Assembly (NCBI RefSeq): GCF_044704955.1
Contig: NC_091999.1
Span: 38,564,001-38,628,000, forward strand
Length of the DNA stretch: 64,000 bases
Direction of reading: 5' to 3'
Source: Pristiophorus japonicus
Taxonomy: Eukaryota
A program made the position numbers and the translations under genes. Shown here in pieces: positions 3,956 through 45,300 of this stretch (positions are counted from its first letter, which is position 1; the number at the start of each line of letters is the position of its first letter). The notes beneath the pieces were generated by a model. It searched no databases. It was not told the origin of the DNA and worked only from the letters and a program-made list of their open reading frames with translations.

Positions 3956-4164
3956 NNNNNNNNNNNNNNNNNNNNNNNNNNNNNNNNNNNNNNNNNNNNN
4001 NNNNNNNNNNNNNNNNNNNNNNNNNNNNNNNNNNNNNNNNNNNNNNNNNNNNNNNNNNNNNNNNNNNNNNNNNNNNNNNNNNNNNNNNNNNNNNNNNNNN
4101 NNNNNNNNNNNNNNNNNNNNNNNNNNNNNNNNNNNNNNNNNNNNNNNNNNNNNNNNNNNNNNNN
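3956..4164. other. Assembly gap (run of N)
   Basis: 209 consecutive N. Confidence 0.99.
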
Positions 4165-5573: not shown

Positions 5574-8479
5574 TCAGTACCCCATTCCTGCTTTCTCGCC
5601 ATACTCCTTGATCCCCCTAGTACTAAGGACCTCATCTATCTCCTTTTTGAATATATTTAGTGAATTGGCCTCAATAACTTTCTATGGTAGAGAATTCCAC
5701 AGGTTCACCACTCTCTGGGTGAAGAAGTTCCTCCGCATCTCGGTCCTAAATGGCTTACCCCTTATCCTTAGACTGTGACCTCTGGTTATGGACTTCCCCA
5801 ACATTGGGAACATTCTTCCTGCATCTAACCTGTCTAACCCCGTCAGAATTTTAAATGTTTCTATGAGGTCCCCTCTCATTCTTCTGAACTCCAGTGAATA
5901 CAAGCCCAGTTGATCCAGTCTTTCTTGATAGGTCAGTCCCGCCATCCTGGGAATCAGTCTGGTGAACCGTCGCTGCACTCCCTCAATAGCAAGAATGTCC
6001 TTTCTCAGGTTAGGAGACCAAAACTGTACACAATACTCCAGGTGTGGCCTCACCAATGCCCTGTACAACTGTAGCAACACATCCCTGCCCCTGTACTCAA
6101 ATCCCCTTGCTATGAAGGCCAACATGCCATTTGCTTTCTTAACCGCCTGCTGCACCTGCATGCCAACCTTCAATGACTGATGTACCATGACACCCAGGTC
6201 TTTTTGCACCTCCCCTTTTCCTAATCTGTCACCATTCAGATAATATTCTGTCTCTCTGTTTTTACCACCAAAGTGGATAACCTCACATTTATCCACATTA
6301 TACTTCATCTGCCATGCATTTGCCCACTCACCTAACATATCCAAGTCGCTCTCCAGCCTAACAGCATCCTCCTCGCAGCTCACACTGCCACCCAACTCAG
6401 TGTCATCCGCAAATTTGGAGATAATACATTTAATCCCCTCATCTAAATCATTAATGTACAGTGTAAACAGCTGGGGCCCCAGCACAGAACCTTGCGTTAC
6501 CCCACTAGTCACTGCCTGCCATTCTGAAAAGTACCCATTTACTCCGACTCTTTGTTTCCTGTCTGACAACCAGTTCTCAATCCATGTCAGTACACTACCC
6601 CCAATCCCATGTGCTCTAACTTTGCGCATCAATCTCTTGTGTGGGACCTTGTCGAACGCCTTCTGAAAGTCCAAATATACCACATCAACTGGTTCTCCCT
6701 TATCCACTCTACTGGAAACATCCTCAAAAAATTCCAGAAGATTTGTCAAGCATGATTTCCCTTTCACAAATCCATGCTGACTTGGACCTATCATGTCACC
6801 TCTTTCCAAATGCACTGCTGTGACATCCTTAATAATTGATTCCATCATTTTACCCACTACCGATGTCAGACTGACCGGTCTATAATTCCCTTTTTGCTCT
6901 CTCCTTCCTTTTTTAAAAAGTGGGGTTACATTGGCTACCCTCCACTCCATAGGAACTCATCCAGATTCAATGGAATGTTGGAAAATGACTGTCAACGCAT
7001 CCACTATTTCCAAGGCCACCTCCTTAAGTACTCTGGGATGCAGTCCATCAGGCCCTGGGGATTTATCGGCCTTCCATCCCATCAATTTCCCCAACACAAT
7101 TTCCCGGCTAATAAGGATTTCCCTCAGATCCTCCTCCTTACTCGACTCCCCGACCCCTTTTTTAACCGGAAGGTTGTTCGTGTCCTCCTTCGTGAATACC
7201 GAACCAAAGTACTTGTTCAATTGGTCCGCCATTTCTTTGTTCCCCGTTATGACTTCCCCTGATTCTGACTGTAGGGGACCTACGTTTGTCTTTATGAACC
7301 TTTTTCTCTTTACATATCTATAGAATCTTTTGCAATCCGTCGTAATGCTCCCTGCAAGCTTCTTCTCATACTCCATTTTCCCTGCCCTAATCAAACCCTT
7401 TGTCCTCCTCTGCTGAGTTCTAAATTTCTCCCAGTCCCCAGATTCGCTGCTATTATTGGCCAATTTGTATGCCACTTCCTTGGCTTTAATACTATCCCTG
7501 ATTTCCCTTGATAGCCACGGTTGAGCCACCTTCCCTTTTTTATTTTTATGCCAGACATGAATGTACAATTGTTGTAGTTCATCCATGCGGTCTCTAAATG
7601 TCTGCCATTGCCCATCCACAGTCAACCCCTTAAGTATCATTCGCCAATCCATCCCAGCCAATTCACGCCTCATAACTTCAAAGTTAGCCTTCTTTAAGTT
7701 CTGGACCATGGTCTCTGAATTAACTGTTTTATTCTCCATCCCAATGCAGAATTCCACCATATTATGGTCACTCTTCCCCAAGGGGCCTCGCACAACGAGA
7801 TTGCTAATTAACCCTCTCTCATTACATAACACCCAGTCTAAGATGGCCTCCCCCCTAGTTGGTTCCTCGACATGTTGGTCTAAAAAACCATCCCTTATGC
7901 ACTCCAGAAAATCCTTCTCCACCGTATTGCTTCCAGTTTGGTTAGCCCAATCTATGTGCATATTAAAGTCACCCATTATAACTGCTGCACCTTTATTGCA
8001 CGCACCCCTAATTTCATGTTTGATGCCTCCCCAACATCACTACTACTGTTTGGAGGTCTGTACACAACTCCCACTAACGTTTTTTGCCCTTTAGTGTTCT
8101 GCAGCTCTACCCATAGAGATTCCACATCATCCAAGCTAATGTCCTTCCTACCTATTGCCTTAATCTCCTCCTTAACCAGCAATGCTACCCCACCTCCTTT
8201 TTCTTTTATTCTATCCTTCCTGAATGTTGAATACCCCTGGATGTTGAGTTCCCAGCCCTGATCATCCTGGAGCCACGTCTCCGTAATCCCAATCACATCA
8301 TATTTTTTAACATCTATTTGCACAGTTAATTCATCCACCTTATTGCGGATACTCCTTGCATTAAGACACAAAGCCTTTAGGCTTGTTTTTTTAACACCCT
8401 CTGTCCTTTTAGAATTTTGCTGTACAATGGCCCTTTTTGTTCTTTGCCTTGGGTTTCTCTGCCCTCCACTTTTCCTCAT
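5574..8479 (-). pseudogene. CR1 ORF2 (APE endonuclease + reverse transcriptase), disrupted
   Basis: Split into ORFs 7976..8479 (LCLNARSIRNK, GITETW), 6957..7976 (GDFN, SDH) and 5682..6950 (RT). One 1-nt frameshift near 8025 and in-frame stops at 6957-6959 and 5682-5684. Confidence 0.9.
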
Positions 8480-8556
8480 CTCCTTTCTGTCATATGTTTT
8501 TGCCTCCTTTTTGTTTCCCTCTATTTCCCTGCATTGGTTCCCATCCCCCTGCCATA

Positions 8557-9504
8557 TTAGTTGAACTCCTCCCCAACAGCACTAGCAAACACTCCCCCGA
8601 GGACATTGGTTCCGGTCCTGCCCAAGTGCAGACCGTCCGGTTTGTACTGGTCCCACCTCCCCCAGAACCGGTTCCAATGCCCCAGGAATTTGAATCCCTC
8701 CCTGCTGCACCATTGCTCAAGCCACGTATTCATCTGAGCTCTCCTGCGATTCCTACTCTGACTAGCACGTGGCACTGGTAGCAATCCCGAGATTACTACT
8801 TTTGAGGTCCTACTTTTTAATTTAGCTCCTAGCTTCTTAAGTTCATTTCGTAGGAACTCATCCCTTTTTTTACCTATGTCTTTGGTACCAACGTGCACCA
8901 CGACAACTGGCTGTTCTCCCTCCCTTTTTAGAATGTCCTGCACCCGCTCCGAGACATCCTTGACCCTTTCACCAGGGAGGCAACATACCATCCTGGAGTC
9001 TCGGTTGCGACCGCAGAAACGCCTATCTATTCCCCTTACAATTGAATCCCCTATCACTATCGCTCGCCCATTCTTTTTCCTGCCCTCCTGTGCAACAGAG
9101 CCAGCCACGGTGCCATGAACTTGGCTGCTGCTGCCCGCTCCTGATGAGTCATCCCCCTCAACAGCACTCAAAGCAGTGTATCTGTTTTGCAGTGGGATGA
9201 CCACAGGGGACCCCTGCACTACCTTCCTTGCACTACTCTTCCTGCTGGTCTTCCATTCCCTCGCTGGCTGTGGACCCTTCTCCTGCGGTAAGACCAACTC
9301 GCTACACGTGATACTCACGTCGTTCTCAGCATCGTGGATGCTCCAGAGTGAATCCACCTTCAGCTCCAACTCCGCAACGCGGACCGTCAGTAGCCGGAGG
9401 TGGACACACTTTCCGCACATGTAGTCGTCAGGGACACTGGTTTTGTCCTCGTGTTCCCACATGGTACAGGAGGAGCATATCACGTGACCGAGCTGTCCTG
9501 CCAT
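8557..9504 (-). CDS. CR1 ORF1 protein (zinc finger / coiled coil / SGNH esterase-like), 315 aa, intact
   Basis: CSSC...CGKC zinc finger, LTVRVAELELKVDSL zipper, VIGDSIVR and DGLHL esterase motifs typical of CR1 ORF1. Confidence 0.9.
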   Translation of the reverse strand: MAGQLGHVICSSCTMWEHEDKTSVPDDYMCGKCVHLRLLTVRVAELELKVDSLWSIHDAENDVSITCSELVLPQEKGPQPAREWKTSRKSSARKVVQGSPVVIPLQNRYTALSAVEGDDSSGAGSSSQVHGTVAGSVAQEGRKKNGRAIVIGDSIVRGIDRRFCGRNRDSRMVCCLPGERVKDVSERVQDILKREGEQPVVVVHVGTKDIGKKRDEFLRNELKKLGAKLKSRTSKVVISGLLPVPRASQSRNRRRAQMNTWLEQWCSREGFKFLGHWNRFWGRWDQYKPDGLHLGRTGTNVLGGVFASAVGEEFN

Positions 9505-9684
9505 GACTCAACCCTTAGATACACTTAAATTGCCGACAACAATGTTAAAAGTTACTGACTAAAAAGAAAAAGAAAAACTACTCACCAATCAGCAGCCAAT
9601 CACTTCCCACGTTGGCTGTGACGTCACCTATTGATTTCTTTCTACTTCTTTTTTGACTTCTCTCAGCTGGAGCTGCACAAGTAC

Positions 9685-9863
9685 GCCTCTCTCGACTCCC
9701 GCCTCTCTCGACGCTCTCCGGACTGCTGAGCCTTTTATAGGCCGCTGCCTCTCTCGACTCCCGCGTCTCTCGACGCTCCCCGGACTGCTGAGCCTTTTAT
9801 AGGCCGCTGCCTCTCTCGACTCCCGCGTCTCCCGACGCTCCCCGGACTGCTGAGCCTTTTATA
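9685..9863 (-). repeat. Three tandem 62-bp monomers in the CR1 5' UTR, each with a - strand TATAAAAGG box
   Basis: Units start at 9685, 9747 and 9809 (gcctctctcgactcccgc...gagccttttatag). Confidence 0.9.
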
Positions 9864-10112
9864 CCCATCTTTTATACCCATCTCCAGCACTCGGTTACAT
9901 AGAGTGATAAAAATTCAGATTATAGGGGATACTTTATTGGTACAGATGCATGGATATATAGCAGGAGATGGAGAAACACAAACTGGTCGTGTCTTTAGAA
10001 CCTGATAATGTATTTCAATCTCAGAGATTCACGACCCTGTGAAGCAGTGAGGAAATAAATTGATTTTATTTACAGTCCAGATGTGAGTCCATTCTGTTGG
10101 TGATGTGGAAGG

Positions 10113-10195
10113 AGTGACGTGGACCCAGAATCCGCCTCTATCAGGGAATCAACGGGCGGCGCCTGTAACCTCGCCCCCACCTCCCGGGTATTTAA
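10113..10195 (+). promoter_or_regulatory. Putative VH promoter: CRE/TCR-decamer-like AGTGACGTGG (10113-10122) and TATA-like TATTTAA (10189-10195)
   Basis: Lies about 95-175 bp upstream of the leader ATG. Shark VH promoters are known to lack the octamer and carry a TCR-like decamer; no ATGCAAAT seen here. Confidence 0.6.
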
Positions 10196-10287
10196 CTGCC
10201 GGTCACTGGGACCGCAATACAACAGTCTGGGAGTGCGTTTGCCCAGTGAGTTCTTGCCGAAATCATTCACCACACATTGCCAGGAGG

Positions 10288-10333
10288 ATGAGGTCGGCTA
10301 TTTCTCTCAGTCTGTTGCTGGCTTTCTTTTCCC
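10288..10333 (+). CDS. IGHV: IgH leader exon (MRSAISLSLLLAFFS)
   Basis: ATG at 10288, hydrophobic signal peptide, phase-1 donor GTGAGT at 10334. Confidence 0.92.
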
Positions 10334-10458
10334 GTGAGTAGTTTTTATTGTCCAAGTCTTTCATTGTTCCTGTCTCAGTGTTAGTCTCTCTGGAATGTTA
10401 CAGAATTAGGAATCGTTTCACCAGGATTGATCCTCGGGGTTTTTGATTATTTCTACAG

Positions 10459-10763
10459 GTGTCCAGTCGGATATGGTGTTGACTCAGCCCGAGGCAGAGA
10501 CCAGGATTCCCGGGGGCTCCCTGAGACTGACCTGTAAAACCAGCGGCTTAGATCTTGGTGGCAGCTACATGTACTGGGTCCGCCACGTTCCCGGACAGGG
10601 GCTGGAGTGGCTGATTAGATATTACAGTTCATCGGATAAGCATTACACCCCGGGGACTGAGGGCCGATTTACTGTGTCCAAAGATACTTCAAGCAACATC
10701 TTCGCGTTGGACATGAAGAAACTGCGGAGCGAAGACACCGCCATCTATTACTGTGCAAGGCAC
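10459..10763 (+). CDS. IGHV: VH exon, shark IgM type, open frame
   Basis: Acceptor tttctacag at 10450-10458; [13 protein letters not shown]...LTCKTSG...[12 protein letters not shown]...RFTVSKD...[10 protein letters not shown] with conserved Cys, Trp and Cys. Confidence 0.96.
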
Positions 10764-10802
10764 CACAGCGAGAGGAACCAGGGCTTGACCCGTACAAGAA
10801 CA
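10764..10802 (+). promoter_or_regulatory. VH recombination signal sequence, 23-bp spacer
   Basis: CACAGCG (10764-10770), 23 nt, ACAAGAACA (10794-10802). Confidence 0.93.
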
Positions 10803-11207
10803 GATCGAGGGGGAATTCAATAACGTCCATCATAACCTGACGGTCAGTAATTGTGTCAAATGCAATGATAACGGCATTGTTCAAAACCAGACCACAAACC
10901 GCTTCTTACAAAACTAAGACACTGATAATTCAATGGTGAAAATATAACACTGTAACCAATGTACTGAGGGAGGTTTCGGTTGTGCTCCTGTTTAATGTTA
11001 ACAGTGTCAACAATTGCCCAGCTGGACATGATGCTCGATTCACTGTGCCTGATACCTGCAGGGAGCTGGTGAGAACTGTGTTCTCCTTCTATTTGTTCTA
11101 CAAACTGTTGGCTAAATTCTAAACTTGATAAGAAGCGAATTTGTATTTGAAGTGCATGTGTATTTCGAATGAATGTTGAGAATCAGTACTGAGCAGAGAC
11201 TGAATGC

Positions 11208-11235
11208 AATATTTGTACGGGTTCCTATCACTGTG
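11208..11235 (-). promoter_or_regulatory. 12-bp-spacer RSS (D-type 5' signal) in front of the J-containing segment
   Basis: AATATTTGT (11208-11216; ACAAATATT on -), 12 nt ACGGGTTCCTAT, CACTGTG (11229-11235). No nonamer at the 22- or 23-spacer positions. Confidence 0.85.
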
Positions 11236-11300
11236 GGACCACGGGAATAAGGACGCCATGGGCTACTGGGGACCAGGGACCATGGTGACGGTGATTGCAG
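11236..11300 (+). CDS. IGHJ: Pre-joined D(D)-JH segment (DHGNKDAMGYWGPGTMVTVIA)
   Basis: WGxG J motif, phase-1 donor GTAAGG at 11301; 65 nt long, longer than a typical JH, and preceded by a 12-RSS. Confidence 0.85.
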
Positions 11301-14300
11301 GTAAGGAACATTCCTACATTCTGCAACTGTTGTATTTGTGCCTTTATTTTACATTTCTCTTTATTTTAATAATTATTTCGTTCACTGAAACTTGGGTTCG
11401 GTGGGTTCTCTATTGAGATTTTTCAATGTTTTATGTAATTCTGCTACAAAGTGATTATAGAATTCAACTGTTTCTCCACATAAGTTGTTGTTGAAGTGAT
11501 TTGGTGTTTATCTGCTAACGAGTTTCTGTGCTTGAGTTACGTTAAATCCTTTAAAGTTGTTACACTCTTTGACACTTCTGCAATGTTTAATCTCGGTGAC
11601 CTATGATTGCTGCAATTTTTCTGATCGAATACAAACATTGTGTTTAAATATTTTTGAAAGAACATTTTAAACACATAACATAAATCTTAGCGCTCAATAT
11701 ATATTCTTAAGGAATTTAAAGATTTTAGTGAAAATTACATTTGTCATCTACTGACCGAATGTTCCCGAATGCACAGATTCAATACGTGAAGTGTTGCTGT
11801 AATTAAGGACTGAAAAATTAACACATTTCCAGATGGACCTGATTTAAATTAATATTACTAACATTATAATGATGTAGTAATATCACCCATTATTATTAAA
11901 ATATGCTATAATATTAACATTAATGTATTTTACATGATCCATCAAATCACAATTCTGCTGTCATTATTTTATATTTCAGTTAAATTCAATCATAAGTTAT
12001 TTTAGTTTTAGGCGGCTTCGGTGATTGTGTAAAGAGACTTTTTGCAATGATACATTTAATTCTGCTGAAATGGTTTAGAGAATGAAGGATCTGTTCATGA
12101 AAGGTTCTGTCCGCCCCTCAGTGATGTGATTTAGTATTGATCTGCTGAGGAGAGTTTGTGCCGGTGTTATTCAGAATACCAAAAATTTGTGAAACTATTT
12201 CCCGTTTCTACAATGTTTAATATCGGTGACAGCGGGCAGCAGCAGGTTCCTGATCGAATACAAACAAGATATGTGTTTGAAACTGTTTGAAAGCAGATTG
12301 TAGGCAGAGAACAGGAAGGTTTTAGGAATCAGAAATCATTGAAATATATTTTAACATAACAATTATTGGTGATAATTATATATTCAACTATAAATTTATG
12401 TTTACGATGCTGATATTTACTGAGTGAAACGTAACTGTAATTACCAGCTATATAATTAGCAATTATTCAGGTTGTAGCTGAAATAAATTACGATTAACAA
12501 ACCGATTATAATATTATAATGCGATAATATCTTCCAATGTTATTAAAATATGTTATAATATCAATATAATTTTCTTAATATTATTTGCCTTCCAAAATCC
12601 TGCTGTACACTGGGCTCCATTAAGAGGAGCAGAAACTTTTAGAGGCTGGATACAATTATTAATTATGCCTGCAATTAGTTCACTGACAACATATTGATTC
12701 CACCGTGTGTTCAGTTTGAGTCGGGAGTTCAGTTACTTTTTACCTCCTGTTTACAGAGATGATTGGCATTGTCTTTAATTATAACTCAAAGCCGTGTTGT
12801 AAATTGCATTTTGTCAATTTAATATGAAATTCTTACTGTGCAACCGAAATTTGTTATTGAATCACTATTGTGTTTTGTTTGATACCGATAGAATTATCAC
12901 TAAACTAATCTTAAACAGTTTGCAAGATCAGCGGCTGTGAGTCAGGCGTCACCGGCAGTCAAATAATTATACATGTGATTATATTCAAATTCAAGACTGC
13001 ATAGGCTGGAGATAGGCAAATAATCCATTGAAATTCAAGCAGATTAATTTACTTAAAAAATGTTCATCTTGTTTAGAATTTAACACAACTTCCTTTCTCC
13101 CAAAGCGGTGCTATATAAGGGATAGAACGGTAGACAAAGCACAGGTCATATCTGAGAATTATGTTAATTATTATTAATATTAAATTGATGAACAAAGTCT
13201 CTCCTCCATTTTCTCATTCAGGTTCAGTGTGGCAGATGGCCTGAATGATTTGTTATCCTACAGTTTTACACTAACCATTCTGGAAATTAGTTTCAAGAAA
13301 TAGCAGAATGTATTTAATAATTAATTTGGGGGCATTGTGTGAATAATGGGAGTGAACTGTAAATGATTGTCTGTGTTATTAAATAGCAGAAGTTCTGCTA
13401 CTGACTGCAAACTGGTTTTAATTAAGAAAACCATTTTTGGGAAGTTAAGATTGTGGAGAATATTTCAGCTCGAGAGTCCAGTTTAGTAAACAAGTGGTTT
13501 ACAGCACATCGGACTTGTGACCCGGGCCGGACAGTGAACTATTTAAAATAGTCCACTCCTCAATCCATCATGTGCAATGTACTCTGAAAATAGACCCAGT
13601 TTTTGTTATGTCAGAATATGTAGAATTTAAAAATGTATCGGTAGAGAACGGGACAGAAGTAGAACTGCGTAATGAGCGTCAATTAGTCAAATGTGATTTG
13701 AGTTAAGTAAAAATAATTTATTTTTCTGATTGTATTTATGTATTAATATGCTGCTTAATATTTTACTGTTGATGAATTGTTATGGTAAGTTAAGTAAACC
13801 TTAATATATCACAAGTTGCCAGGCAGAAAAGGTTTTTAAATTATTATTCATTAATTGTATCAGTAAGACTGAAATTCAAGCACATTAAGTTAATTTCAAA
13901 AGTTCCAGGTACGTGTGCTTCTGAGGAGGAAGTGCCAGACAGGTACTCAGAGTATTTCCAATAATCAGCTAACACGAACACAAACTTAAAATGTAATATT
14001 CGTTCTAATTCATTAAACATAAATGATCTCTTGCAATTGCATTGCATACTGGTCAACATTACAGTTATTACACTAACACAAGGGTTGGAGAGAATGTTTA
14101 ATTAATTCCTAAATTAATTTAGAAGATAATGCATGTATAACTCGGCTGTGCTGAGTTCGATAAGCTATCGCTTAATATTTTAGTTGATTTTGCCTCGATG
14201 ATTTTACAGGTTATATTTACTATTGCAAATATGTCAAATCAGTGGGTGATCAGGTTTCAATGTATATGTCTCCTGGATTGTGACATTCTTACGCTGTTAG

Positions 14301-18601: not shown

Positions 18602-18901
18602 TAACACCGTTTCCCCCCAATCTCTACGCCCTGCTCTCCTGCTGTGAACAACCCAGCACCGATGGCTCCATCACATACGGCTGTTTGGCGATGGACTACT
18701 CCCCCGATATCACCAGCCTTTCCTGGAAGAAAGATAAAGATCCTATCACCACTGCATTGAAGACCTACCCGTCAGTGTTCAACAAGAAAGGAATCTACAC
18801 CCAGAGCAGCCAGTTAACCATCACCAAGTCAGATGTGGGGAGCAGCACAATCTTCTGTGAGGTTCGACGTGGTGTGTCGGTCTGGGCCATCACAATGCCA
18901 G
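18602..18901 (+). CDS. IGHM: Cmu1 exon
   Basis: AG at 18600-18601, GT at 18902; [16 protein letters not shown]...[10 protein letters not shown]...WKKD...TQSSQLTI...FCEVRRG, an Ig C1 domain. Confidence 0.95.
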
Positions 18902-19547: not shown

Positions 19548-19865
19548 ATCCTGAACCGGACATCGGTCCTCCAACTGTTCTCCTCACGCTGAGTTCCACT
19601 GAACAAATCACCACCAGCAGATATGCAAGCGCCGTGTGTTCAATCATCGATTTCCGGCCAAAGTCACTGACCGTGAATTGGCTGAAGAGTGGACAACTCC
19701 TGGATTCGGGCTTCGTCACCTCTCCCGTCTTTGAGGTGAACGGGAACTTCTCGACGGCCAGTCGGCTGACAGTCCCCGCCGAGGAATGGTTCACCGGCTC
19801 GGTCTACACCTGCCAAGTCACTCATGAAGGGGTCACGCAAAGCCGTAACTTCAGCAGATCTCAGG
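19548..19865 (+). CDS. IGHM: Cmu2 exon
   Basis: tttgaag acceptor, GTAAG donor at 19866; [13 protein letters not shown]...[16 protein letters not shown]...YTCQVTHEG...SRSQ. Confidence 0.95.
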
Positions 19866-21816: not shown

Positions 21817-22125
21817 TGGATGTCCCATGCAGTGATTCAAAAATCACTCTTCGCCCACCGTCACTGGAACAGGTCTTACTGGAGGCGACGGTGACCTTAA
21901 CCTGCGTCGTGTCTGACGCTCCTTATGGGCTCACCGTGTCCTGGACCCGAGAAAAGGAGGCTTTGAAATCAGAGATTGCCGTCCAACCGGGAGAGGATCC
22001 CAACAGCGTGATCAGCAACTTAAACATCTCGACACAAGACTGGCTGAGTGGGGATAAGTTCTACTGCGTTGTGAGCCATCAGGATATGCCGACTCCGATC
22101 AGAGATTCCATCCACAAGGAAAAGG
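21817..22125 (+). CDS. IGHM: Cmu3 exon
   Basis: tcgcag acceptor, GTGAG donor at 22126; [32 protein letters not shown]...W...[13 protein letters not shown]...KEK. Confidence 0.95.
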
Positions 22126-23038: not shown

Positions 23039-23430
23039 CGAAAGATCGGCGGGAACCGGCCGTGTCTGTCCTCCTGCCCTCGGTAGAAGAAGTCTCCGCT
23101 CCGAGGTTGGTCAGCCTCACCTGCTTAGTGAGAGGTTTCTCCCCCCGAGAGATCTTCGTCAAATGGACCGTCAATGACTAGCCGGTGGATTCCGGCAACT
23201 ACAAGAACACCGAGGTGATGGCGGAGAACGGCAGCAGCTCCTTCTTCATGTACAGCCTGCTATCCATTGCAGCCGAGGAGTGGGCCAGCGGCGCTTCTTA
23301 CTCCTGTGTGGTGGGACATGCAGCGATCCCCTTGAAGATCACCAACAGAATCGTCAATAAATCCAGCGGTAAACCCAGTTTTGTGAACATTTCCCTTGTT
23401 CTGATGGACACCGTCAATTCTTGTCAATGA
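23039..23430 (+). pseudogene. IGHM: Cmu4 exon with secretory tailpiece; premature TAG at 23179-23181
   Basis: [14 protein letters not shown]...[33 protein letters not shown]...YSCVVGH...NKSS|[20 protein letters not shown]; internal membrane-form donor GTAAA at 23369. Confidence 0.93.
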
Positions 23431-24274: not shown

Positions 24275-27200
24275 GTACAATGTGAGATTCTAAACCATGG
24301 TCTAAATATTTAAAATTTGCCACATGAGTATTATATTCTGAAATAACTATTTATTCCACGTAATATTTTTAAATAGGGTTGGGGGTGCAGCAGTCCCTGT
24401 TAATTGTAAACAAACATGTTGAATTCTAATGGGCCATATCTAAACTGGTGATTGAATCCACTGCGGGTTTCTCACAGTTGTGTCCCTGATGTTTCTGAGG
24501 CCCATCGGTTGAATCGTTGCATTCTTTCAGCTGACGTCACATAATTCCTCAAACAGAACACATTTACACAGAGCCAGGGAGAATAAATGTGAAAGTGAGT
24601 TTGTGTGTGTTCACATGGAAGTATGTTGATGACTTTGTGTAAGTGTGTGTGTTTTTGTGTAAGTGCACAATTACACATAAACACACATAGACTTACATAT
24701 AAAGACATACATTAACACTCTGACACATAATATTATACATAACTAGAATGTAATGAAAACCATCTTTTTAAAATCCAGTTATTGATACTCTCTGAAACTT
24801 CGAACAGTAGCAATAATAGATATCAATCCAAACACACACTACACAAAACACAGTTACACACACTTACACACATAAAAACACACGTCAATCCACACACACA
24901 CTTACACAAAGCAAACTTACACAAAACACACTTACACACGCATAAACACACACACCAATCCAAACACACACTTACAAAATGCACACTTGCACACACTTAC
25001 ACACACATAAATACACACATCAATCCATACACGCACTTACATAAAACATACTTTCACACACATAAACACACACATCAATCCACACACACACTTACACCAA
25101 ACACACTTACACACACATAAACACACAGACACCAATCCAAACACACACTTACAAAAACCACACTTGCATATACTTACACACACATAAATACACACATCAA
25201 TCCATACACGCACTTACATAAAACATACTTTCACACACATAAACACACACATCAAGCCACACACACACTTACACCAAACACACTTACACACACATAAACA
25301 CACACACACCAATCCAAACACATACTTACAAAAAACACACTTGCATATACTTACACACACATAAATACACACATCAATCCATACACGCACTTACAAAAAA
25401 GATACTTTCACACACATAAACACACACATCAATCCACACACGTACTTACACCAAACACACTTACACACACATAAATACTCACATCAATCCACAGACACAC
25501 TTACACAAAACACACTTACGCACACATAAATACACATATCAATCCACACACGCACTTACACAAAACACACTTACACACACAAACATACACATCAATCCAC
25601 ACACGCACACACACATAAACACACACGTCAATCCACACACACACTTACACAAAACACAGGTGCAAACACTTACACACACTTACAAACACTTATACACATT
25701 TACAAAAATCACATTTACACACACATAAACACACTGTGTACAATGTGAGATTCTAACCCATGGTGTAAAGATTTTAAACTTGCCACATGAGTATTCTATT
25801 CTGAAATAACTATTTATTCCACGTAATATTTTTAAATAGTGTTGTGGTGAAATTGTCCCTGTTAATTGTAAACGAACATGTTGAATTCTAACGGGCCATA
25901 TCTAAACTGGTGAATTAATCCTCTGCGGGTTTCTCACAGTGTCCCTGATGTTTCTGAGGCCCATCGGTTGAATTGTTGCATTCTTTCGGCTGACGTCACA
26001 TTATTCCTCAAACAGAACACATTTATAGAGTCGGGAGAATAAATATGAAAGTGAGGTTGTGTGTGTTCCCATGGAAGTGTGTTGATGATTTTGTGTAAGT
26101 GTTTGTGTTTTTGTGTAAGTGCACAATTACACATAAACACACATAGACTTATATATAATGACATACGTTAACACTCTGACACACAATATTACACATAACT
26201 AGAATATAATGAAAACCATCATTGTAAAATCCAGTTATTGATACTCTCTGAAACTTCGAACATTAGCAATAATAGACAATAATCCAAACACACACTACAC
26301 AAAACACAGTTACACACACATAAAGAAACACTTCAATCCACACACACATTTCACAAAACATACTGACACGCACTTACACACCCATAATTACTTCACATCA
26401 ATCCACACATACACTTACACAAAATACACTTACACACACTTACACACACACATCAATCCAAACACACAATTACACAAAGCACACTTACACACACTTACAC
26501 GGAACACACTTACACACACATAAACACACACATACCAATCCAAACACACTTACAAAAAGCACACTTGCACACACATAAATAGACACATCAATCCATACAC
26601 GCACTTACACAAAACACACTTTCACACACATACACACACACATCAATCCACACATACACTTACACAAAACACAGGTACACACACTTACACACACATTAAC
26701 ACACACATCAATCCACACACACACTTACACAAAACACACTTACTCACACATAAACATACACATCAATCCACACACGCACTTACGCAAAGCACACTTACAC
26801 ACACATAAACATACACATCAATCCACACACGCACTTACCCAAAATACACACACACACACACTACACACACATAAACACACACGTCAATCCACACACACAC
26901 TTACACAAAACACACGTGCAAACACTTTTACACACTTACACAAAACACATTTACAAACACATAAACGCACACATGAATCCACACATGCACTTACACAAAA
27001 CACACGTACACACACTTAAATACACATAAACACAAAAATCAATCCAAACACACTTACAAAAAGCACACTTATACACACTTACACACACACATTTTCACAC
27101 ACGTCAATCCAAACACCCACTTACAAACACACACTTCCACATACATCAATCCAAACACTCACTTACAAAAACACACTTACACACACTTACACACACATAA

Positions 27201-27770
27201 ACACACACATCAATCCACACACACACTAACATAAAACACACACACACAAACACACACAAACTTACCTGCAAACCCACTGTTACATGTAAACACGCACACG
27301 CTTACACCTAAACATAAACGAACACTCAGACATAATCACACACTTACAGTTACAGACAAACACACACATGAACTTACATACATATACACAAGGATACACA
27401 TACACTTACACAAATGCACACACGTGAACACACTTGCACACAAACATACACACACAAACATCAATACACAAACCCTTAGACATGGACGTGCTTATACATA
27501 AACTTACCTGCACCCAACTACACCAAATCGCACACTCATAATTACAGATAAACACATGCTTCCATATAGACACAGGCCCACTTACACAAAATAACACAAA
27601 GATTTACACAGGCATACTCAATCTTACAACTGCACACGTGCACAAACTTACACATCAACAAACACAGTTACACATAAACACACACACACACACACTTTTA
27701 CACATAAACGTACACACACAGAGAAAAGCACGCACACAATTACATAAACACACACAGTAACACCCTCACA
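24275..27770. repeat. ~1.46-kb tandem duplication, each copy ending in a complex CA-rich microsatellite
   Basis: gtacaatgtgagattctaa at 24275 and 25738 followed by ~550 bp of near-identical sequence; (cacacacttacacaaaa...catcaatc)n tracts at ~24830-25735 and ~26280-27770. Confidence 0.9.
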
Positions 27771-28473
27771 GAGACACGGAAACATGAACTAATCCAGAAC
27801 AAGAGATAGTCATGCACTCACATTTACAGTAAAGAGCACAAACAAAAACGTCCGGCTATAGAAGAATGTCAATTAAAATGCAGTTTTTGGCCGGACAAAG
27901 TACCAATGCTTGGCCAGAATAAATAATACCTGATACCATAATATCTCACATTTCACTATTCTATCCTTACACATACACTGGATCAATATAGTTCTTGCAA
28001 ACCGATATGTTAATTATGGACAGAGCATTGTCTTAACAAATAAATATACAAGGTAAAAACTCACAACTGATCTCTTAAATAGCCCCTTTGGCAGGCTCCA
28101 AATAATTAACTACCTTAACCTACCGGTAAAGCAATAGAGATCCAGCTGTAATCCTCACTCGATATTTCATCATATTATTCTGGAATGATCAAGCGTAACG
28201 AAGTCATCCAAAATCAATTAGCCTCTGAGATTGAAGAAAAACTATCATATTTTCCAAAACGGACGAAAAGAGGATCATAAAGAAAGAACGACTGTGGAGT
28301 GAGGCACAGAGAGAGGTTGCTGAGAGTGATTAACTTAACACAAGGTATACATTCAAAGTTAAATTAGAGTATAAACTAATACCTTACGGGAAAGAAAAGA
28401 GGAAATAAATTAATAGTATGACATCCCGCATTAAAAACGATCTGAATATATTTCCTCCCCTACATCCCCGTAG

Positions 28474-28601
28474 ATTCCTCAGACCACATCTGGAGTGAAG
28501 AGTACGAGGACGAGAGCGACAAAATCTGGACAACCGCTTCCACATTCATCATCCTGTTCTTCCTGAGCATTTCCTACAGCACTGCCATCACTCTGGTGAA
28601 G
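28474..28601 (+). CDS. IGHM: mu TM1 exon
   Basis: cgtag acceptor, GT donor at 28602; DSSDHIWSEEYEDESDKIWTTASTFIILFFLSISYSTAITLVK with the conserved antigen-receptor TM motif. Confidence 0.95.
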
Positions 28602-36388: not shown

Positions 36389-36909
36389 CCGTCAGAGATT
36401 GGATTCTGTCTCTGTATTAATCTGTGCTTGAACTCCATCCCCACAGACACACACAGACACATAGGTTTTCAGGGAGCATTTTCGAACATTTTTCCTAATA
36501 TTGACACGGGCGCAACTCTCCTATTCTTTTTCGAGTAAGGCTCTGGGACCTTTCACATCCACCCGAGGGTGGAGATGAAGCTTCAATTTAACATTTCATC
36601 CGAAAGTCAACTGCTTCAACAATCCCAAATTCCCCAGGTACTGCATTTGAGTGTCAGCCAAGATGACGTTACCAAGTCTCAGAGTGCGACTTAAACACAC
36701 AACCTCCTGATTCAGTCGAGAATGGAGCCACTGAAAGAAAGCCGATACCAAAGATCACAACCGTATTATTTTCCCCAAGCTTTTTAAAATTTCCAGGACG
36801 CACCAAATTCATGGTGATGATTTCCATAGACAACTGCACATACACAGAGACATACATACAGGTAGACATACACAGACACACACACAATAACCAAAAATAT
36901 ACACGCATC

Positions 36910-37445
36910 AACATAGAAACAAAAAGAATATTTGCAGGAGTAGGCCATTCGGTGCTTCGAGCCTGCAGCATCATTCAATAAGATCATGGCTGAACATTCA
37001 ACCTCAGTACCCCTTTCCTGCTTTCTCTCCATACCCCTTGATCCCTTTAGCCGTAAGGGCCATATCTAACTCCCTTTTGAATATAACTAACGAACTGGCC
37101 TCAAGAACTTTCTGTGGTAGAGAATGCCACAGGTTAACCTCTCTCTGAGTGAAGAAGTTTCTCCTCATCTCGGTCCTAAATGCCTTACAACTTATTCTTA
37201 GACTGTGACCCATGGTTCTCGAACTCACCAGCAATGGGAACATTCTACCCGCCTCTAACCTGTCCAATCTCTTCAGAATTTTATATATTTCTATGGGAGC
37301 GCCTCTCATTCTTCTAAACTCCAGTGGATACCAGCCAAGTTGATCCAGTCTCTCCTCATATCTCAGTCCTGCCATCCCGGGAATCAAGCTGGTGAACCTT
37401 CACTGTACTCCCTCAATAGCAAGGACGTCCTTCCTCAGATTAGGG
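36910..37445 (-). mobile_element. CR1 3' fragment
   Basis: ORF 37004..37387 encodes the RT C-terminus ending GIKGYGEKAGKGY; 3' UTR and tail present. Confidence 0.9.
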
Positions 37446-38043
37446 GAAGTCGACAGACACATTGAGAGACAGAGACAAACCGACAAACAGGGAGAGACAG
37501 AGAGCGAGATAGAGACAACGAGAGACATAAAGTGTGAGACTGAGAGGGGGGTTCAGACTGAATGAGACATACACAGAGATGTGTTTGCGTGCTCCAGAAA
37601 GAGAGGGAGGCAAATGGTGATGGAATGACAGAGAAAAACACAGGGACAAAGATAGAGACAAAGACGGAGACAGATAGAGAGAAAGACAGATAGAGAGAGA
37701 GGCATAGAGACAAAAACAGAAAATGATGAAAATACTCATCAGGTTGGAGACAGGGAATAACAGCGACATGGACAGGCAGATCATGGCAAAGAGAGAGCCA
37801 GTCAGACAGAGAGACTGAGAGAATCCCATTGGAACAGAACTGGACAGAGTGAGAAAGAGACAGAGACAAACAGAGTGAGTCAGAGACTCAAACACACAAA
37901 CAGTTCTCTGAAGAGAGAAAGAGGCAGAGACTGAGCGACGCAGATACATTTCACAATCGGCTCAGAGTGTCATAGAAAAATGCTGATTCAACAGGTGAAA
38001 ATCGGGTACCACTGAACAGGATGGGAGGAAATCTGTGTTAAAT

Positions 38044-38124
38044 TAAGGAGTTGAGTTCGAACCCACGCGGGTTTAAATCAATTACATTTTAAATCCAATG
38101 CCTTAACCACTCGGCAATCCTGGT
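38044..38124 (-). pseudogene. tRNA-Leu(TAA)-like pseudogene
   Basis: Reverse complement ACCAGGATTGCCGAGTGGTTAAGGCATTGGATTTAA...CCGCGTGGGTTCGAAC resembles vertebrate Leu-TAA; stems are broken. Confidence 0.75.
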
Positions 38125-38879
38125 CCTGTCAGCATTCGGATTCTGTCTCTGTGAGAATCTGGGGTGGAACCCCACCCTCACGGACACAAAGGGTTTCAGT
38201 GCGCATTTACGAACATTTTTAGTAATAGTGACACGGGGGCAGCTCTCCTATTCTTTTTCGAGTAATGCTCTGGGAACGTTCACATCCACCCGAGGTTGCA
38301 GACGGAGCTTCAATTTAACATTTCATCCGAAAGTCAACAGCTTCGAGAATGAAAAATTCCCCAAGTACTGCAATTGAAAATCAGCAAAGATTATATGCTC
38401 AAGTCTCAGGAGTGCGACTTGAACACACAAACTCCAGATTCAGTCGAGAATGCTGCCACTGAACCAAAGCCGATACCAAAGTTCACAACCCTATTATTTT
38501 CCGCAAGTTTTTTAAAAATGTTCAAGCACATACCAAATTCATGGTGATGATTTCCACAGACAGTTGCACATACGCAGAGACATACATACAGATAGACAGA
38601 CAGAGAGAGACACACACACACAACCAAAAATATACACGCACCAACGGACATGCACAGAGTGCCTTCGACATTTCGAGGGAAAGACAGGCTGAAGCAATGT
38701 CGCAAATTTGGCTGACTTTTGCGTTTTTCTATCCGTATGTATCGTGAATATTGCAGATTAATAACAATGAGTAAAAATGTGTCAGTGTTGAAAGGTGTGG
38801 CACATTATTCCATCTATCACAGGATCAGTTTTGCAAAGACCTGGTTAAATTGTGAAGTGGAATGAAAAATGCTTAGAAC

Positions 38880-38962
38880 CATAGTCGGCAAGGTTCGATC
38901 CTTCGTGATGAAAACCCAATGGATTATCTCGTCTATTGCCTTAAAATCTCGGCCACGGCTAC
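38880..38962 (-). pseudogene. tRNA-Ser-like pseudogene
   Basis: Reverse complement GTAGCCGTGGCCGAG...ATCCATTGGGTTT...CCTTGCCGACTATG; heavily mutated. Confidence 0.7.
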
Positions 38963-39167
38963 TGGCTAACTGGCTTGTTAAATGTTACTCAGATAAAACT
39001 CTGTGCAACTGACGGCCACAGAATCCTGAAACAGTCTCCGTTTGTGAAAGATCTGGAAGAGGCAATCCCCTCTTGCTGTATTTTTCGTGTTCGAAATTGC
39101 TCTTCAACTTTTTAACATTAATCTATACCAGGAAACAGAAGTAAGATTCAACATTTTGAAAAAGTTT

Positions 39168-39240
39168 CATCCTATCGGGGCATTGAACCCCACATCTCAC
39201 GCTTGACAAGCAGGGATACTGACCACGAAATTAACAAATA
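39168..39240 (-). pseudogene. tRNA-Asp(GTC)-like pseudogene
   Basis: Reverse complement ...GTGGTCAGTATCCCTGCTTGTCAAGCGTGAGATGTGGGGTTCAATGCCCCGATAGG. Confidence 0.65.
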
Positions 39241-40463
39241 TGAATTCTATCAGAGCAGGAATCGAGCTGTGAACAGAAATGGACACCATGAGAAGTAGAC
39301 AGGCACATTGAGGGACAGAGACAAACCGACAAACAAGGAGAGACAGGCAACGAGATAGAGACAACAAGAGACGGAAAGTGTGAGACTGAGAATGAGAGGC
39401 AGACAGCTGGAGAAAAAGACTCAAACGCAGACATATACAGAGATGTGTGTGTGTGTGTGTGATCCATAAAGAGAGAGAGGGAAAGATTGAGAGAAAGACA
39501 GTGATAAAGACAGTAACAAGGAGAGAGACAGATAGAGAGAGAGCGGCAGGTAGAGAGAGAGAGAGACAAAGATATAAACAGAAAATTATGGAAATACTCA
39601 GCAGGTTAGAGACAGGAACTACCAGCGACAGGCAAAGAGAGACAGACAGGCAGAGACATAGACAGACAGAGATGATGGGAAAGAGTGAGTCAGTCAGACA
39701 GAGAGACTAAGAGAATCCCATTGGAACAGAACTGGACACCGTGAGAAAGAAACAGACACATTGAGAAACAGAGACAAACATGGAAACAGGGAGTGACAGA
39801 CAGCGAGATAGAGACAAAGAGAGACAGAAAGTTTGAGACTGAGAGGGAGGGTCAGACTGAATGAGACAAAGACTCAAATACATACATACACAGAAATGTG
39901 TTTGCGTGCTACATAAAGAGAGGGAGGGAAATAGTGATGGAATGACAAGAAAAAGCCAGGGACAAAGAGAGAGAAAAAGAGGGAGACAAACAGAGAGAAA
40001 GACAGATAGAGAGAGAAACAAGTAGACAAAAACAGAAAATTATGGAAATACTCATCAGGTTAGAGACAAGGACGAACAGAGACAGGCAAAGACATGGGCA
40101 GACAGAGATGATGGGAAAGAGAGAGACAGTCAGACAGAGAGTCTGAGAGAATCCCTTTCGAACAGAACTGGACACCGTGAGAAGAATACAGATTGAGAGA
40201 CAGAGACAAACAGAAAAATAGGGATAGACAGAGTGAATCAGAGAGAGGCGGACTGAGAGAGACAAAGACTCAAACACAGAAATACATACACATCTCTCTA
40301 AAGAGAGAGAGAGAGGCATAGACAGATACAAATACAGCGAAACAGATACATTTCACAATTCATTTCATCATCTGCTCAGAGTTTCACAGAGTTACAGAAA
40401 AATGCAACTGCAACACATGAAAATCGGGTGTCACTGAGCAGGATGGGAAAAATCTCTGTTTTA

Positions 40464-40544
40464 TTAAGGAATGGTATACGAACCCACGCGGGAAAAAGCC
40501 ACGGAATTTTAAGGCCAACGCTTTAACCACTCGGCCATCCGGGT
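40464..40544 (-). pseudogene. tRNA-Leu(TAA)-like pseudogene
   Basis: Reverse complement ACCCGGATGGCCGAGTGGTTAAAGCGTTGGCCTTAA...CCGCGTGGGTTCG. Confidence 0.75.
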
Positions 40545-41308
40545 CCTGTCATCAGTTCGACTCTGTCTCTCCGAGAATCTGGGCTTCAACTCCACCCCCA
40601 TAGACAAACACACACACGTGGGTTTCAGGGAGCATTTCCGAACATTTTTAGTAATAATGACAAGGTGGCAACTCTCCTTTTCTTTTTCGTGTAATGCTCT
40701 GGGAACTTTTCCATCAAGCCGAGGGTGCAGACGGAGCTTCAATTTAACATTTCATCCGAAAGTCAACAGCTTCAAAATGCAAAATTCCCCAAGTGCTGCA
40801 GTTGGGTGTTAGCCAAAATGTATATGCTCCAATCTCAGGAATGCGACTTGAACACACAAACTCCTGATTCAGTCGAGAATGCTGCCACTGAACCAAAGCC
40901 GATACCAAAGTTCACAATCGTATTATTTTTCCCGAAGTCTTTTTAATAAGTTCCAGGACATACCAAATTCATGGTGATGATTTCCACAGACAGTTGCACA
41001 TACACAGAGACATATATAGAGATAGACAGACACAGAGACACAGACAAACACATAACCAAAAATATATACGCACCAACGGACATGCACCGATGCCTCAGAC
41101 ATATAGAGGGAGAAGCAGGCTGTATCACTGTCGCTACTTTGGCTGATTTTTGCGTTTTTCTATCCTTATGTATCGTCAATATTGCAGATTAATAGAAATG
41201 AAAAATAAATGTCAGTCTTTACAGCTGTGGGATATTATTCCACCTATTTCGGTATGTGTTTTGCAAGACCTGGTTAAATTGTGAAATGGAATGAAAAATG
41301 CCAAGAAT

Positions 41309-41391
41309 TGCAATCAGTAGGTTTCGAACCTGTGCGGGGAAACCCCAATAGATTATCGAGCTCATCACCTAAACCAGTCGGCTACGACTGC
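41309..41391 (-). pseudogene. tRNA-Ser(CGA)-like pseudogene
   Basis: Reverse complement GCAGTCGTAGCCGACTGG...CTCGATAATCTATTGGGGTTTCCCCGCACAGGTTCGAAACCT. Confidence 0.72.
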
Positions 41392-41608
41392 TGGTTTGCT
41401 GCATTTTAAATTTTACTCAAATAAAACTCAGTCATCTATCTCTGTGCAGCAGCCGGCCACAGAATCCTGAATAAGTTTCCGTTTGCTAAAAAATCTGGAA
41501 GGCAATCTTCTTTTTCAGTATTTTTACTCTTCTATATTGCTCTCGAACTTTTTAACATGAATCTATACCAAGAAACAAAAGTAAAATTCTACATTTTGAA
41601 AAAGCCTT

Positions 41609-41680
41609 CTCCCCATCGGGAAATTCAACTCTGGTCTCCCGCGTGTCAGGCGGTGATATTCAACATTGTACTAAAGAGGT
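41609..41680 (-). pseudogene. tRNA-Asp-like pseudogene (anticodon mutated to GAC)
   Basis: Reverse complement ACCTCTTTAGTACAATG...CCGCCTGACACGCGGGAGACCAGAGTTGAATTTCCCGATGGGGAG, 72 nt. Confidence 0.72.
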
Positions 41681-42367
41681 ACTGACAGGTGCAGCTTTTT
41701 AGACAGCAGGAATCGAGCTGTGAAAAGAACTGGGCACCATGAAAAAGAGGCAGACACAATGAGAGACAGTCAAACAGAGGAACTGACGGGTATGTGCTCT
41801 CTCAGAGCAGGAATCGAGCTGTGAACAGAACTGGACACCATGAGAAGTCGACAGAAACACTGAGAGACAGAGACAAACAGAGAAACAGGGAGAGACAGGC
41901 AGCGAGATAGAGACAAAGAGACAGATAAAGTGTGAGACTGAGAGGGAGAGACAGACACAGTGAGAAAATAACTCAAGCACACACATACACAGAGATATGT
42001 GCATGCTCTATAAAGAGAGAGAGGGAAAGAGTGATAGCAATACAGAGATGAAGACAGGGACAAAGAGAGACACAGAGATAGCCAGATAGAGAGAGAGACA
42101 GATAGAAAGAGAGATAGAGATAAAAAGAGAAAATTATGGAAATACTCAGCAGGTTAGAGACAGGTACGAACAGAGACAGGAAAAGAAAGGCAGACAGGCA
42201 CAGACATAGACAAATAGAAAGAGACGATGGGAAAGAGAGAGACAGTCAGACAGAGAGGGATGATGGGAAAGAGAGAGCCAAATAGACAAAGAGACTGAGA
42301 GAATCCCATTGGAGCAGAACTTTGACACCGAAAGAAAGAAAAAGAATGAGAGACAGAGACAAACAGA

Positions 42368-45300
42368 GAAACATAGAAAATAGGTGCAGGAGTAGGCCAT
42401 TCGGGCTTTCGAGTCTGCACCACCATTCAATAAGATCATGGCTGATCATTCACCTCAGTAACACTTTCCTGCTTTCTCTCCATACCTCTTGATGCCTTTG
42501 GCCATATCGGCAATATCTAACTCCCTCTTCAACATATCCAATGAACTGGCATCAACAACTCTCTGCGGTAGGTAATTCTAGAGGTTAACAACTCTCTGGG
42601 TGAAGAAGTTTCTCCTCATCTCGGTCCTAAATGACCTGCCCCTTATCATTAGACTGTGTCCCCTAATTCTGGACTTCCCCAACATCGGGAATTTTCTTGC
42701 TGCATCTAACCTGTTAAGTCCCGTCAGAATTGTTCATGATTCTATGAGATCCCCTCTCATGCTTCTAAACTCCAGTGACTACAAGCCACTGTAGATCCAG
42801 TCTCTCCTCATATGTCAGTCCTGTCATCCCGGGAATCAGTCTGGTGAACCTTCGCTGCACTCCCTCAATAGCATGAAAGTCCTTCCTCAGATTACGAGAC
42901 CAAAACTGAACACAATATTCCAGGTGAGGTCTCACAAAGGCCCTGTACAACTGCAGTATGGCCTCCCTGCTCCGATACTCAAATCCCCTAGCTATGAAGG
43001 TCAACATTCCTTTTGCCTTCTTCACTGCCTGCTGCAACTGCATGTCAGCTTTCAATGACTGATGTACCATGACGCCCAGGTCTCGTTGCACCTCCCCTTT
43101 TCCTAATCTGTTGCCATACAGACAATATTCTGCCTTCGTGTTTGTGCGACTAAAGTGGATAACCTCACATTTATCCACATTATTCTGCATCTTCCATGCA
43201 TTTGCCAACTCACCTAACCGGTCCAAGTCAGTCTGCAGCCTCTTAGCGTCCTCCTCACAGCTCACATCGCCACCCTGTTGGCATCATCTGCAAACTTGAA
43301 GATATTACACTCAATTCCTTCATCTAAATCATTAATGTATATTGTAAATTGCTGGGATACCAGCACTGAGCCCTGTGGCACCCCACTAGTCACTGCCTGC
43401 TTTTCTGAAAAGGACCCGTTTATTCCGACTCTCTGCTTCCTGTCTGCCAACCAGTTCTCTATCCACGTCAGTACATTATATCCAATACCATGTGCTTTAA
43501 CTTTGCACACCAATACGTCTGTGCGACCTTTGTGAAAGCCTTTTGAAAGTCCAAATACACCACATCCACTGGTTCCCCTTGTACACTATACTAGCTACAT
43601 CCTCAAATAATTTCAGAAGATTTGTCGAGCTTGATTTTCCTTTCATAAATTCATGCAGCTTTGACCAATCCTGTCACTGCTTTCCAAATGCGCTGCAAAT
43701 TCATCTTTAATAATTGATTCCTACATTTTCCCCACTACTGATGTCAGGCTAACCGGTCTATAATTATCCGTTTTCAATCTCCCTCCTTTTTCAAAAATGT
43801 GGTTTTACATTATTTACCCTTCAGTTCATACGAACTGATCTAGAGTCGATAGACTGTTCGAAAATGATCACCAATGCATCCGCTATTTCTAGGGCCACTT
43901 CCTTAAGTACTTTCCAATGCAGACTATCAGGCCCCGGGGATTAATCGGCCTTCAATCCCATCAATTTCCCGAACACAATTACCTGACTAATAAGGATTTC
44001 CTTCAGTTCCTCCTTCTCGCTAGATCCTCGGTGCCCTAGTATTTCTGGAAGGTTATGCGTTCCTTCCTTCGTGAAGACACAACCAAAGTTATTGTTCAAC
44101 TGCTCTACAATTTCCTTCTTCCCCATTATAAATTCACCTGAATCTGATTGCAAGGGACCTACGTTTGTCTTCTCTAATCTTTTTGTCTTCACATATCTAT
44201 AGAACTTTATTAGGTCCCCAGCAAGCTTCCTCTCATAATCTATTTCCCCCCTGCTAATTAAACCCTTTGTCCTCCTCAGCTGAATTGTAAATTTCTTCCA
44301 GTCCTCAGGTTGCGGCTTTTTCTGGACAATTTATATGCCTCTTCCCTGGATTTAACACTATCCTTAATTTCCTTTGTTAGCCACGGTTGAGCCACATTCA
44401 CCGTTTTATTTTTACTCCAGACAGGGAAATATAATTGTTGAAGTTCATCCATGTGATCTTTAAATGTTTGCCATTGCCAATCGAAATTCAAACCCTTTAA
44501 ATATCATTCACCAGTCTATTCTAGCAAATTCACGTCACATACCATCGAAGTTACCTTTCCTTAAGTTCAAGACCCTAGTCTCTGAATTAACTGTGTCACT
44601 CGCCACCTTAATAAAGAATTCTACCTTATTATGGTCACTCTTCCCCAAGGGGCCTCGCACAACAAGATTGCTAATTAGTCCTTTCTCATTACACATCACC
44701 CAGTCTAGGATGGCCAGCCCTCTAGATGGTCCCTCGCTATATTGAGTGAGAAAACCATCCCTAATACGCTCGAGGAAGTCCTCCTGCACCGTATTGCTAC
44801 CTTTTTGGTTAGCCCAATTTACATGTAAAGTAAAGTCGCCCTTGATAACTGCTGTATCTTTATGGCACGCATCCCTAATTTCTTGTTTGATGCTGTCCCC
44901 AACCTCACTACTACTCTCTGCGGATCTGTACACAACTCCTCTTGCGTTTTCTTCCCTTTGGTATTCCGCAGCTCCACCTATTCATATTCCACATCATCCA
45001 AGCTAATGGCGTTCCTTACTATTGCCTTAATTTCCTCTTTAACCAGCAACACTACCCGATCACCTTTTCATTTCTGTCTATGCTTCCTGAATGTTGAATT
45101 CCCAGCCTTGGTCACCCTGGAGCCATGTCTCCGTGATGCCAATTATTTCATATTCAGTAATTGCTGCTTGTGCAGTTAATTCGTCCACCTTATTACGAAT
45201 ACTCCTCGCAATGAGGCACAGAGCCTCCAGGCTTGTTATTTTAACACACTTGGACCCTTTAGAATTTTGCTGTAAAGTGGCCCTATTTGATATTTGCCGT

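Follow-up and report, generated by a model that had tools for sequence, protein, structure and literature searches.

We find that the IgM heavy-chain cluster of Pristiophorus japonicus contained in the window (the whole 64-kb stretch of DNA analysed here) combines a VH segment that is still unjoined with a D(D)J block that, on the best explanation available to us, was already joined in the germ line. We give this explanation a probability of roughly 70%. It is carried by the anatomy of the cluster, in which a V 23-RSS directly faces a 12-RSS, by 17 D-like nucleotides that the segment behind the 12-RSS has in excess of the J segments of sister clusters, and by the full depth at which the junction is found in bulk DNA.

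Throughout, the sister-cluster data are Logan contigs of the species with at least 90% identity to the window, read as 30-nt consensus strings at loose contig ends rather than as full cluster alignments. Runs X1 and X3 are DNA and derive from one sample (S1), probably from the assembled animal, while runs X5 and X6 are RNA-like.

A single IgM minilocus

The window contains one cartilaginous-fish IgM heavy-chain minilocus, which lies on the + strand: V, J, Cmu1 to Cmu4 and transmembrane exons all lie on this strand within ~20 kb, which is the layout of such a minilocus, and a motif scan finds one VH and one J motif (WGxGT) in the entire window. The leader exon (10288–10333, MRSAISLSLLLAFFS.., with a GT donor at 10334) matches the leader of Heterodontus HV01 and is separated from the VH exon by an intron of 125 nt, whose GT..AG splice (10333>10459) is confirmed by a sister-cluster RNA contig. 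The VH exon (10459–10763) is open, ends in ..YYCARH and matches Pfam V-set with an E value of 1e-15; the closest proteins are shark IgM VH domains from Chiloscyllium, Heterodontus and Scyliorhinus, at 66–72% identity.

On the constant-region side, Pfam C1-set matches and splice sites place Cmu1 at 18602–18871 (E 9e-9), Cmu2 at 19548–19865 (E 1.4e-16) and Cmu3 at 21817–22125 (E 3.4e-9), each of them open and with approximate ends. The exon of Cmu4 and its secretory tail (23039–23430) gives a split C1-set match, to which we return below, and transmembrane exon 1 (28473–28601, ends approximate, ..TTASTFIILFFLSISYSTAITLVK) has no Pfam match and is assigned from its sequence character. Splice sites are intact throughout the cluster, and the leader, V, DJ, Cmu1 to Cmu3 and TM1 exons are open. 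The distance from J to Cmu1 is 7.3 kb. Published nurse shark IgM loci have ~400 bp between segments, so that both the ~400-bp spacing of V and DJ and the distance from J to Cmu1 agree with published shark miniloci. An identity as IgW or TCR was considered and rejected on account of the J motif WGxGTxVTV, the IgM-like C exons and the secretory tail of Cmu4.

Upstream of the leader, the region 10087–10288 is ~92% identical in sister clusters, and TATTTAA at 10189 is the sole promoter-like element seen in it; the promoter octamer ATGCAAAT, searched for with at most one mismatch, is absent from 9800–10300. A long LINE-type retroelement with ORF1, endonuclease and reverse transcriptase (RT) ORFs lies on the minus strand at 5682–9504, its 5' end ~430 bp before the V leader and accompanied by ~60-bp tandem repeats (9680–9860), and more RT fragments occur at 198–1580, 31–32 kb, 35–36 kb and 56–58 kb. 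ORFs similar to the integrase and RT/RNase H of LTR-type retroelements are found on the minus strand at 60250–63020. Downstream of Cmu4 and beyond, 24700–28000, 36600–42500 and 47200–47800 are occupied by long stretches of low-complexity sequence that is rich in CA/CT and strongly strand-skewed. A run of N stands at 3956–4164.

Recombination signals of V and of the 65-nt segment

The VH exon runs directly into a 23-RSS (10764–10802) that consists of the heptamer CACAGCG (10764–10770), a 23-nt spacer and ACAAGAACA (10794–10802); the same heptamer is also found directly 3' of V in sister-cluster contigs. An intersegment of ~405 bp (10803–11207) then leads to a 12-RSS (11208–11235), in which the nonamer AATATTTGT (11208–11216; ACAAATATT on the opposite strand) is followed by a 12-nt spacer and the heptamer CACTGTG (11229–11235). 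Directly behind this signal an open segment of 65 nt (11236–11300) begins with GGACCACGGG; its translation in the J frame is DHGNKDAMGYWGPGTMVTVIA, and a GTAAGG donor follows at 11301. From the V coding end to the DJ coding start the distance is 472 bp. All of these elements, namely the V 23-RSS, the gap, the 12-RSS, the segment and its donor, are present as the first-pass annotation had described them. Its further claim, that no RSS-flanked D lies between V and J and no 23-RSS precedes J, is borne out by a relaxed scan of 10771–11235, which returns neither a heptamer/nonamer pair nor a D between two heptamers. The scan does pick up a lone CACTGTG at 11041, which has no nonamer, and the best candidate for a 23-spaced nonamer before the heptamer at 11229 mismatches at 6 of 9 positions.

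How much weight can be placed on the J-side signal? No other 12-RSS with a perfect heptamer occurs in that orientation anywhere in the 64 kb, and the signal adjoins the only WGxGT motif. By our own arithmetic a window should hold ~0.04 such sites, so the J-side 12-RSS is not there by chance, and we interpret it as the 5' RSS that a D has kept. Judged by sequence, the V 23-RSS and the DJ 12-RSS face each other in deletional orientation, have heptamers that begin with CAC and satisfy the 12/23 rule.

An ATG at 11204, just after a TGA, is in frame through the RSS with DJ (MQYLYGFLSLW + DHGNK..). A germline DJ transcript that includes this ATG may encode a D-mu-like product, and the open frame may also be due to chance.

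A D-like 17 nt in front of an ordinary J

The 65-nt segment could in principle be a D fused to a J or a single long J, and the sister clusters bear on this choice. Two distinct sister J segments match the window from 11253 (or 11252) onward. Their heptamers are CACTGTG followed by TT in the DNA contigs (X1/X3), or CACTGT(G) ending at 11252 in an RNA contig (X6). Read from these loose-end strings, the ordinary J of the cluster family is 48–50 nt long and equivalent to 11253–11300. Because the sister J segments start at 11253 behind a heptamer of their own, 11236–11252 is not ordinary J. The sister J boundaries and the sole WGxGT motif delimit a JH proper at 11253–11300 (..DAMGYWGPGTMVTVIA, with a phase-1 donor in which G precedes GTAAGG at 11301), and this leaves 17 nt at 11236–11252 (GGACCACGGGAATAAGG, DHGNK in the J frame), which lie 5' of the sister J starts and which we assign to a D by their match to a sister-cluster D.

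Such a D is visible in the relatives. In a DNA contig from a VD-joined sister, V is followed by AAGGACTACGGGAGTGGGT and then by CACGGTG, so that the D there stops at a 3' heptamer of its own, and a sister VDJ transcript (X6) has ACTGCGGGAGTGGGTAC between V and J. Compared with the sister D GGACTACGGGAGTGGGT, the 17 nt are identical at 12 of 17 positions, as good a match as is found at 9 of 128,000 window positions; over the first 11 nt the identity is 10/11, which is unique in the window, and all five differences (5/17) fall in the 3' half. The D part is also as long as the sister D (17 nt). It begins directly at the retained heptamer, and the J part begins 0–2 nt from the sister J coding end. 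As far as the short contig ends reach, D and J are contiguous here and separate segments in the sisters, which is the mark of a germline-joined gene, and the junction lies at coding ends set by the heptamers of the relatives, which is the signature of RAG. The 65-nt segment is best read as a complete D behind its 5' 12-RSS that runs into a nearly untrimmed J. Of the D1(-D2)-J germline join proposed in the first-pass annotation, the part that stands is the D-like 17 nt next to the 12-RSS; the fusion of both Ds is not supported, and the 17 nt look like one complete D. One recognisable D is seen in the one sister VDJ transcript contig (X6) that has a visible V-J insert.

The 12-RSS itself carries less of the argument than one might expect. 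In both sister J contigs AGTATTTGA precedes the heptamer at a spacing of exactly 12 nt, which parallels AATATTTGT in this cluster, with spacers that are unrelated. As far as the 30-nt strings go, this suggests that the sister J segments may themselves carry a functional 12-RSS, and the 12-RSS is thereby weakened as a sign of joining. A sister JH of the same length with a 12-RSS had been named beforehand as evidence that would speak against a join: the 12-spaced nonamer is apparently there, and the length is not, since the sister J starts at 11253. The similar nonamer-like element in sister J segments also bears on the earlier fear that a substitution in the nonamer A-tract would make this copy recombine poorly; the substitution is probably normal for the cluster family, and the fear would then concern all of its members and not one copy.

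These sister J segments allow for a history in two steps, in which an old germline D2-J join produced a founder of the form V-D1-(12)D2J, the founder was duplicated, and D1 was then joined to D2J in this copy. We regard this history as somewhat unlikely; it refines the germline D(D)J explanation and does not contradict it. It fits the sister J segments, with their 12-spaced nonamer and 0–2 extra nt after the heptamer, but its support comes from 30-nt strings in which the site 23 nt before the sister heptamers is not visible, and no D2 remnant can be identified in this cluster.

Less probable again, and in our judgement decidedly doubtful, is an architecture in which nothing was ever joined, so that a heavy-chain J would simply possess a 12-RSS and a long 5' end, either in a D-less V-J locus or in one whose D was lost by plain deletion. 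The nonamer-like AGTATTTGA at 12-nt spacing in the sister J contigs is what one would see in this case, and long J segments do occur in other vertebrates (human JH6 is 63 nt). However, the two distinct sister J segments start at 11253 and not at 11236, the extra 17 nt match a sister-cluster D that has V on one side and a 3' heptamer on the other, and a sister-cluster transcript uses a similar D between V and J.

The junction in bulk DNA

Contigs of 289 nt (X1) and 278 nt (X3) span 11101–11389 with 0 and 1 differences, respectively, and overlapping perfect contigs (10896–11009, 10980–11130 and 11101–11389) chain across 10896–11389. The contigs across the RSS/DJ junction have a depth of 36.4 (X1) and 51.1 (X3). 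For the perfect contigs at 11006–11130 and 11101–11389 the depth is 36–37 (X1) and 47–51 (X3), and other unique contigs of the same cluster lie at 33–37 (X1) and 45–57 (X3). The D(D)J junction thus appears to be carried by every copy of the cluster in DNA sample S1, although the animal may be heterozygous.

The agreement between junction depth and flank depth argues against a lymphocyte clone that makes up a minority of the cells, and likewise against a collapse in the assembly. Such a collapse had been raised in the first-pass annotation as a way in which the join could prove spurious, and it does not hold up against short-read contigs that cross the junction with 0–1 mismatches at full flank depth. 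Heritability of the junction is strongly suggested, on the basis of one sample from one animal. One further X1 DNA contig joins V to J through 37 other nt (10759–11276) at a depth of 5.6; this V-J joint either belongs to a diverged paralog that is VDJ-joined in the germ line or stems from somatic rearrangement, in which case the sample would contain lymphocyte DNA.

That the D(D)J block is itself a somatic lymphocyte rearrangement, or an artefact of assembly (a collapse or chimera of a D RSS and a J), has a chance that we put close to nil: shark thymocytes and B cells often contain V-DDJ intermediates (PMC2435157), and the low-depth V-N-J joint (5.6) implies lymphocyte DNA or a joined paralog in the DNA sample, but the junction-crossing contigs, with 0–1 mismatches, stand at the depth of the unique flanks (36–37 in X1, 47–51 in X3) and overlapping perfect contigs run across 10896–11389.

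How the join would have arisen

Shark IgM loci have the order V(23), (12)D1(22), (12)D2(12), (23)J. With this order, a D-to-J join together with a D1-to-D2 join would leave exactly the arrangement that we see, a V 23-RSS facing a D 12-RSS. A D (possibly D1 with a fully trimmed D2) would have been joined to JH in the germ line, most likely by RAG, and the join would have deleted the D-J intersegment along with both of the RSSs facing each other across it. The 12-RSS on the 5' side of the D would have been retained, and VH would have stayed unjoined with its 23-RSS. Joined Ig genes in sharks are generally accepted to be the work of RAG in germ cells. From this, from the RSS arrangement and from V-DDJ as a known product of RAG (see the comparison below), we infer a RAG-mediated germline D(D)J join, that is, RAG as the agent and a germ cell as the place and time.

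The capacity of the cluster to rearrange is likewise a deduction from its structure. What would remain to be done, much as in a light chain, is one V-to-DJ deletion that obeys the 12/23 rule and takes out 472 bp. In the CDR3 produced by it, the D and J part (..HGNKDAMGYW) would be fixed and the V-DJ junction alone would be variable.

Functional state of the cluster

An in-frame TAG (23179–23181) lies within Cmu4 of an otherwise open IgM constant region. The part of Cmu4 before the TAG corresponds to C1-set profile positions 1–37 and the part after it to positions 43–85, and these matches on either side of the TAG mean that one domain has been cut in two. A functional IgM heavy chain has all of its exons open and its splice sites intact, and it is at Cmu4 that this cluster departs from that state. 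Because the secreted and the membrane form both use the TAG-bearing Cmu4, the V-DJ cluster copy in the assembly is probably a pseudogene, at least on this haplotype.

In the RNA-like runs X5 and X6, which are small and consist of contigs that drop rare forms, we find no contig over 11236–11251, only contigs of sister clusters at ~90% identity. The first-pass annotation had envisaged a working heavy chain with a semi-invariant CDR3; with the in-frame TAG in Cmu4 and no RNA contig that contains the D part, this expectation is not supported, and the cluster is more likely to be what past RAG activity in the germ line left behind than a gene that still supplies semi-invariant antibody. Besides spliced and VDJ-joined forms, X6 holds sister-cluster contigs of unrearranged V+RSS and RSS+J (ends at 10764 and 11252), which suggests that IgM clusters give germline (sterile) transcripts.

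Significance

Cartilaginous fish are well known for Ig segments joined in the germ line, and the novelty of the V-DJ configuration is modest. It is chiefly from such joining that RAG is known to have been active in the germ cells of these fish and to have reshaped their antigen-receptor loci. A heritable V-DJ would mean that the D-to-J-first pathway of shark lymphocytes has left germline products as well, and it would provide a natural example of a heavy chain that needs no more than one 12/23 join. Taken together with the VD-joined sisters, the V-DJ cluster offers a way of counting and ordering germline RAG events. Two things limit its value, the probable pseudogene status of this copy and the familiarity of germline joining in general. 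It is chiefly of use as a member of a set of partly joined clusters that could together yield the history of RAG action in the germ line of the species.

A more far-reaching and speculative idea, which we think unlikely, is that the IgM family of this species is built throughout on J segments preceded by a 12-RSS: a D2-J join made in the germ line long ago would have been duplicated, and later germline RAG events would have turned its descendants into VD-DJ and V-DDJ clusters. If this were true, several clusters would assemble in one step, like light chains, and intact V-DJ members would provide semi-invariant heavy chains with little need for RAG, for example in early life. The genome would then preserve, in readable form, one germline RAG event after another.

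Comparison with known systems

The germline-joined forms listed in reviews and open primary papers are VD-J, VD-DJ and VDJ for heavy chains (horned shark, skates) and VJ for light chains, and V-DDJ and V-D-DJ appear there as somatic intermediates only. We find no germline V-DJ heavy-chain cluster in the open literature; subscription papers fall mostly outside this scope, and an earlier description is possible. The view of the first-pass annotation that a germline V-DDJ is not commonly described accords with the open reviews, which give VD-J, VD-DJ and VDJ and not V-DJ.

The known germline-joined IgM clusters share with this one the minilocus layout (V, J and Cmu exons ~7 kb on), a fusion in inherited DNA, the loss of the facing RSS pair and the presumed action of RAG in germ cells. 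They differ in that V is always part of the fused block, whereas in this cluster V remains outside the fusion and the fused segments are D(D)J. Correspondingly, the RSS pair that survives here is the V 23-RSS and the D 12-RSS, while in the known clusters it is a pair on the D/J side.

Nurse shark IgM1gj, a fully germline-joined VDJ with neonatal expression, resembles the cluster in its germline-fixed contribution to CDR3, and it is a precedent for a joined heavy chain with an early-life function. It needs no rearrangement, is without Cmu2 and is expressed; the V-DJ cluster, in contrast, would still need one V-to-DJ join and has four Cmu exons with a stop in Cmu4. IgNAR type III has a germline D1-D2 fusion, and there, as in germline VJ-joined shark light chains, fusion in the germ line likewise restricts junctional diversity, although the isotype and the fused segments are different and light chains have no D.

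The mammalian DJH intermediate is reached by the same order of events, with D joined to J first, the 5' 12-RSS of D retained and the V 23-RSS joining afterwards, and the in-frame ATG at 11204 upstream of DJ is reminiscent of mammalian D-mu transcripts; however, that intermediate is somatic and transient, and the V-DJ described here is probably fixed in the genome. The somatic V-DDJ of nurse shark IgH, a RAG product that is prominent in Group 5 genes (Malecek et al. 2008, PMC2435157), is identical in structure, with V unjoined, D1D2J fused and a V-D intersegment of ~400 bp. In the nurse shark this configuration is found in lymphocytes and thymocytes and is polyclonal, whereas here it stands in the assembled genome and at full depth.
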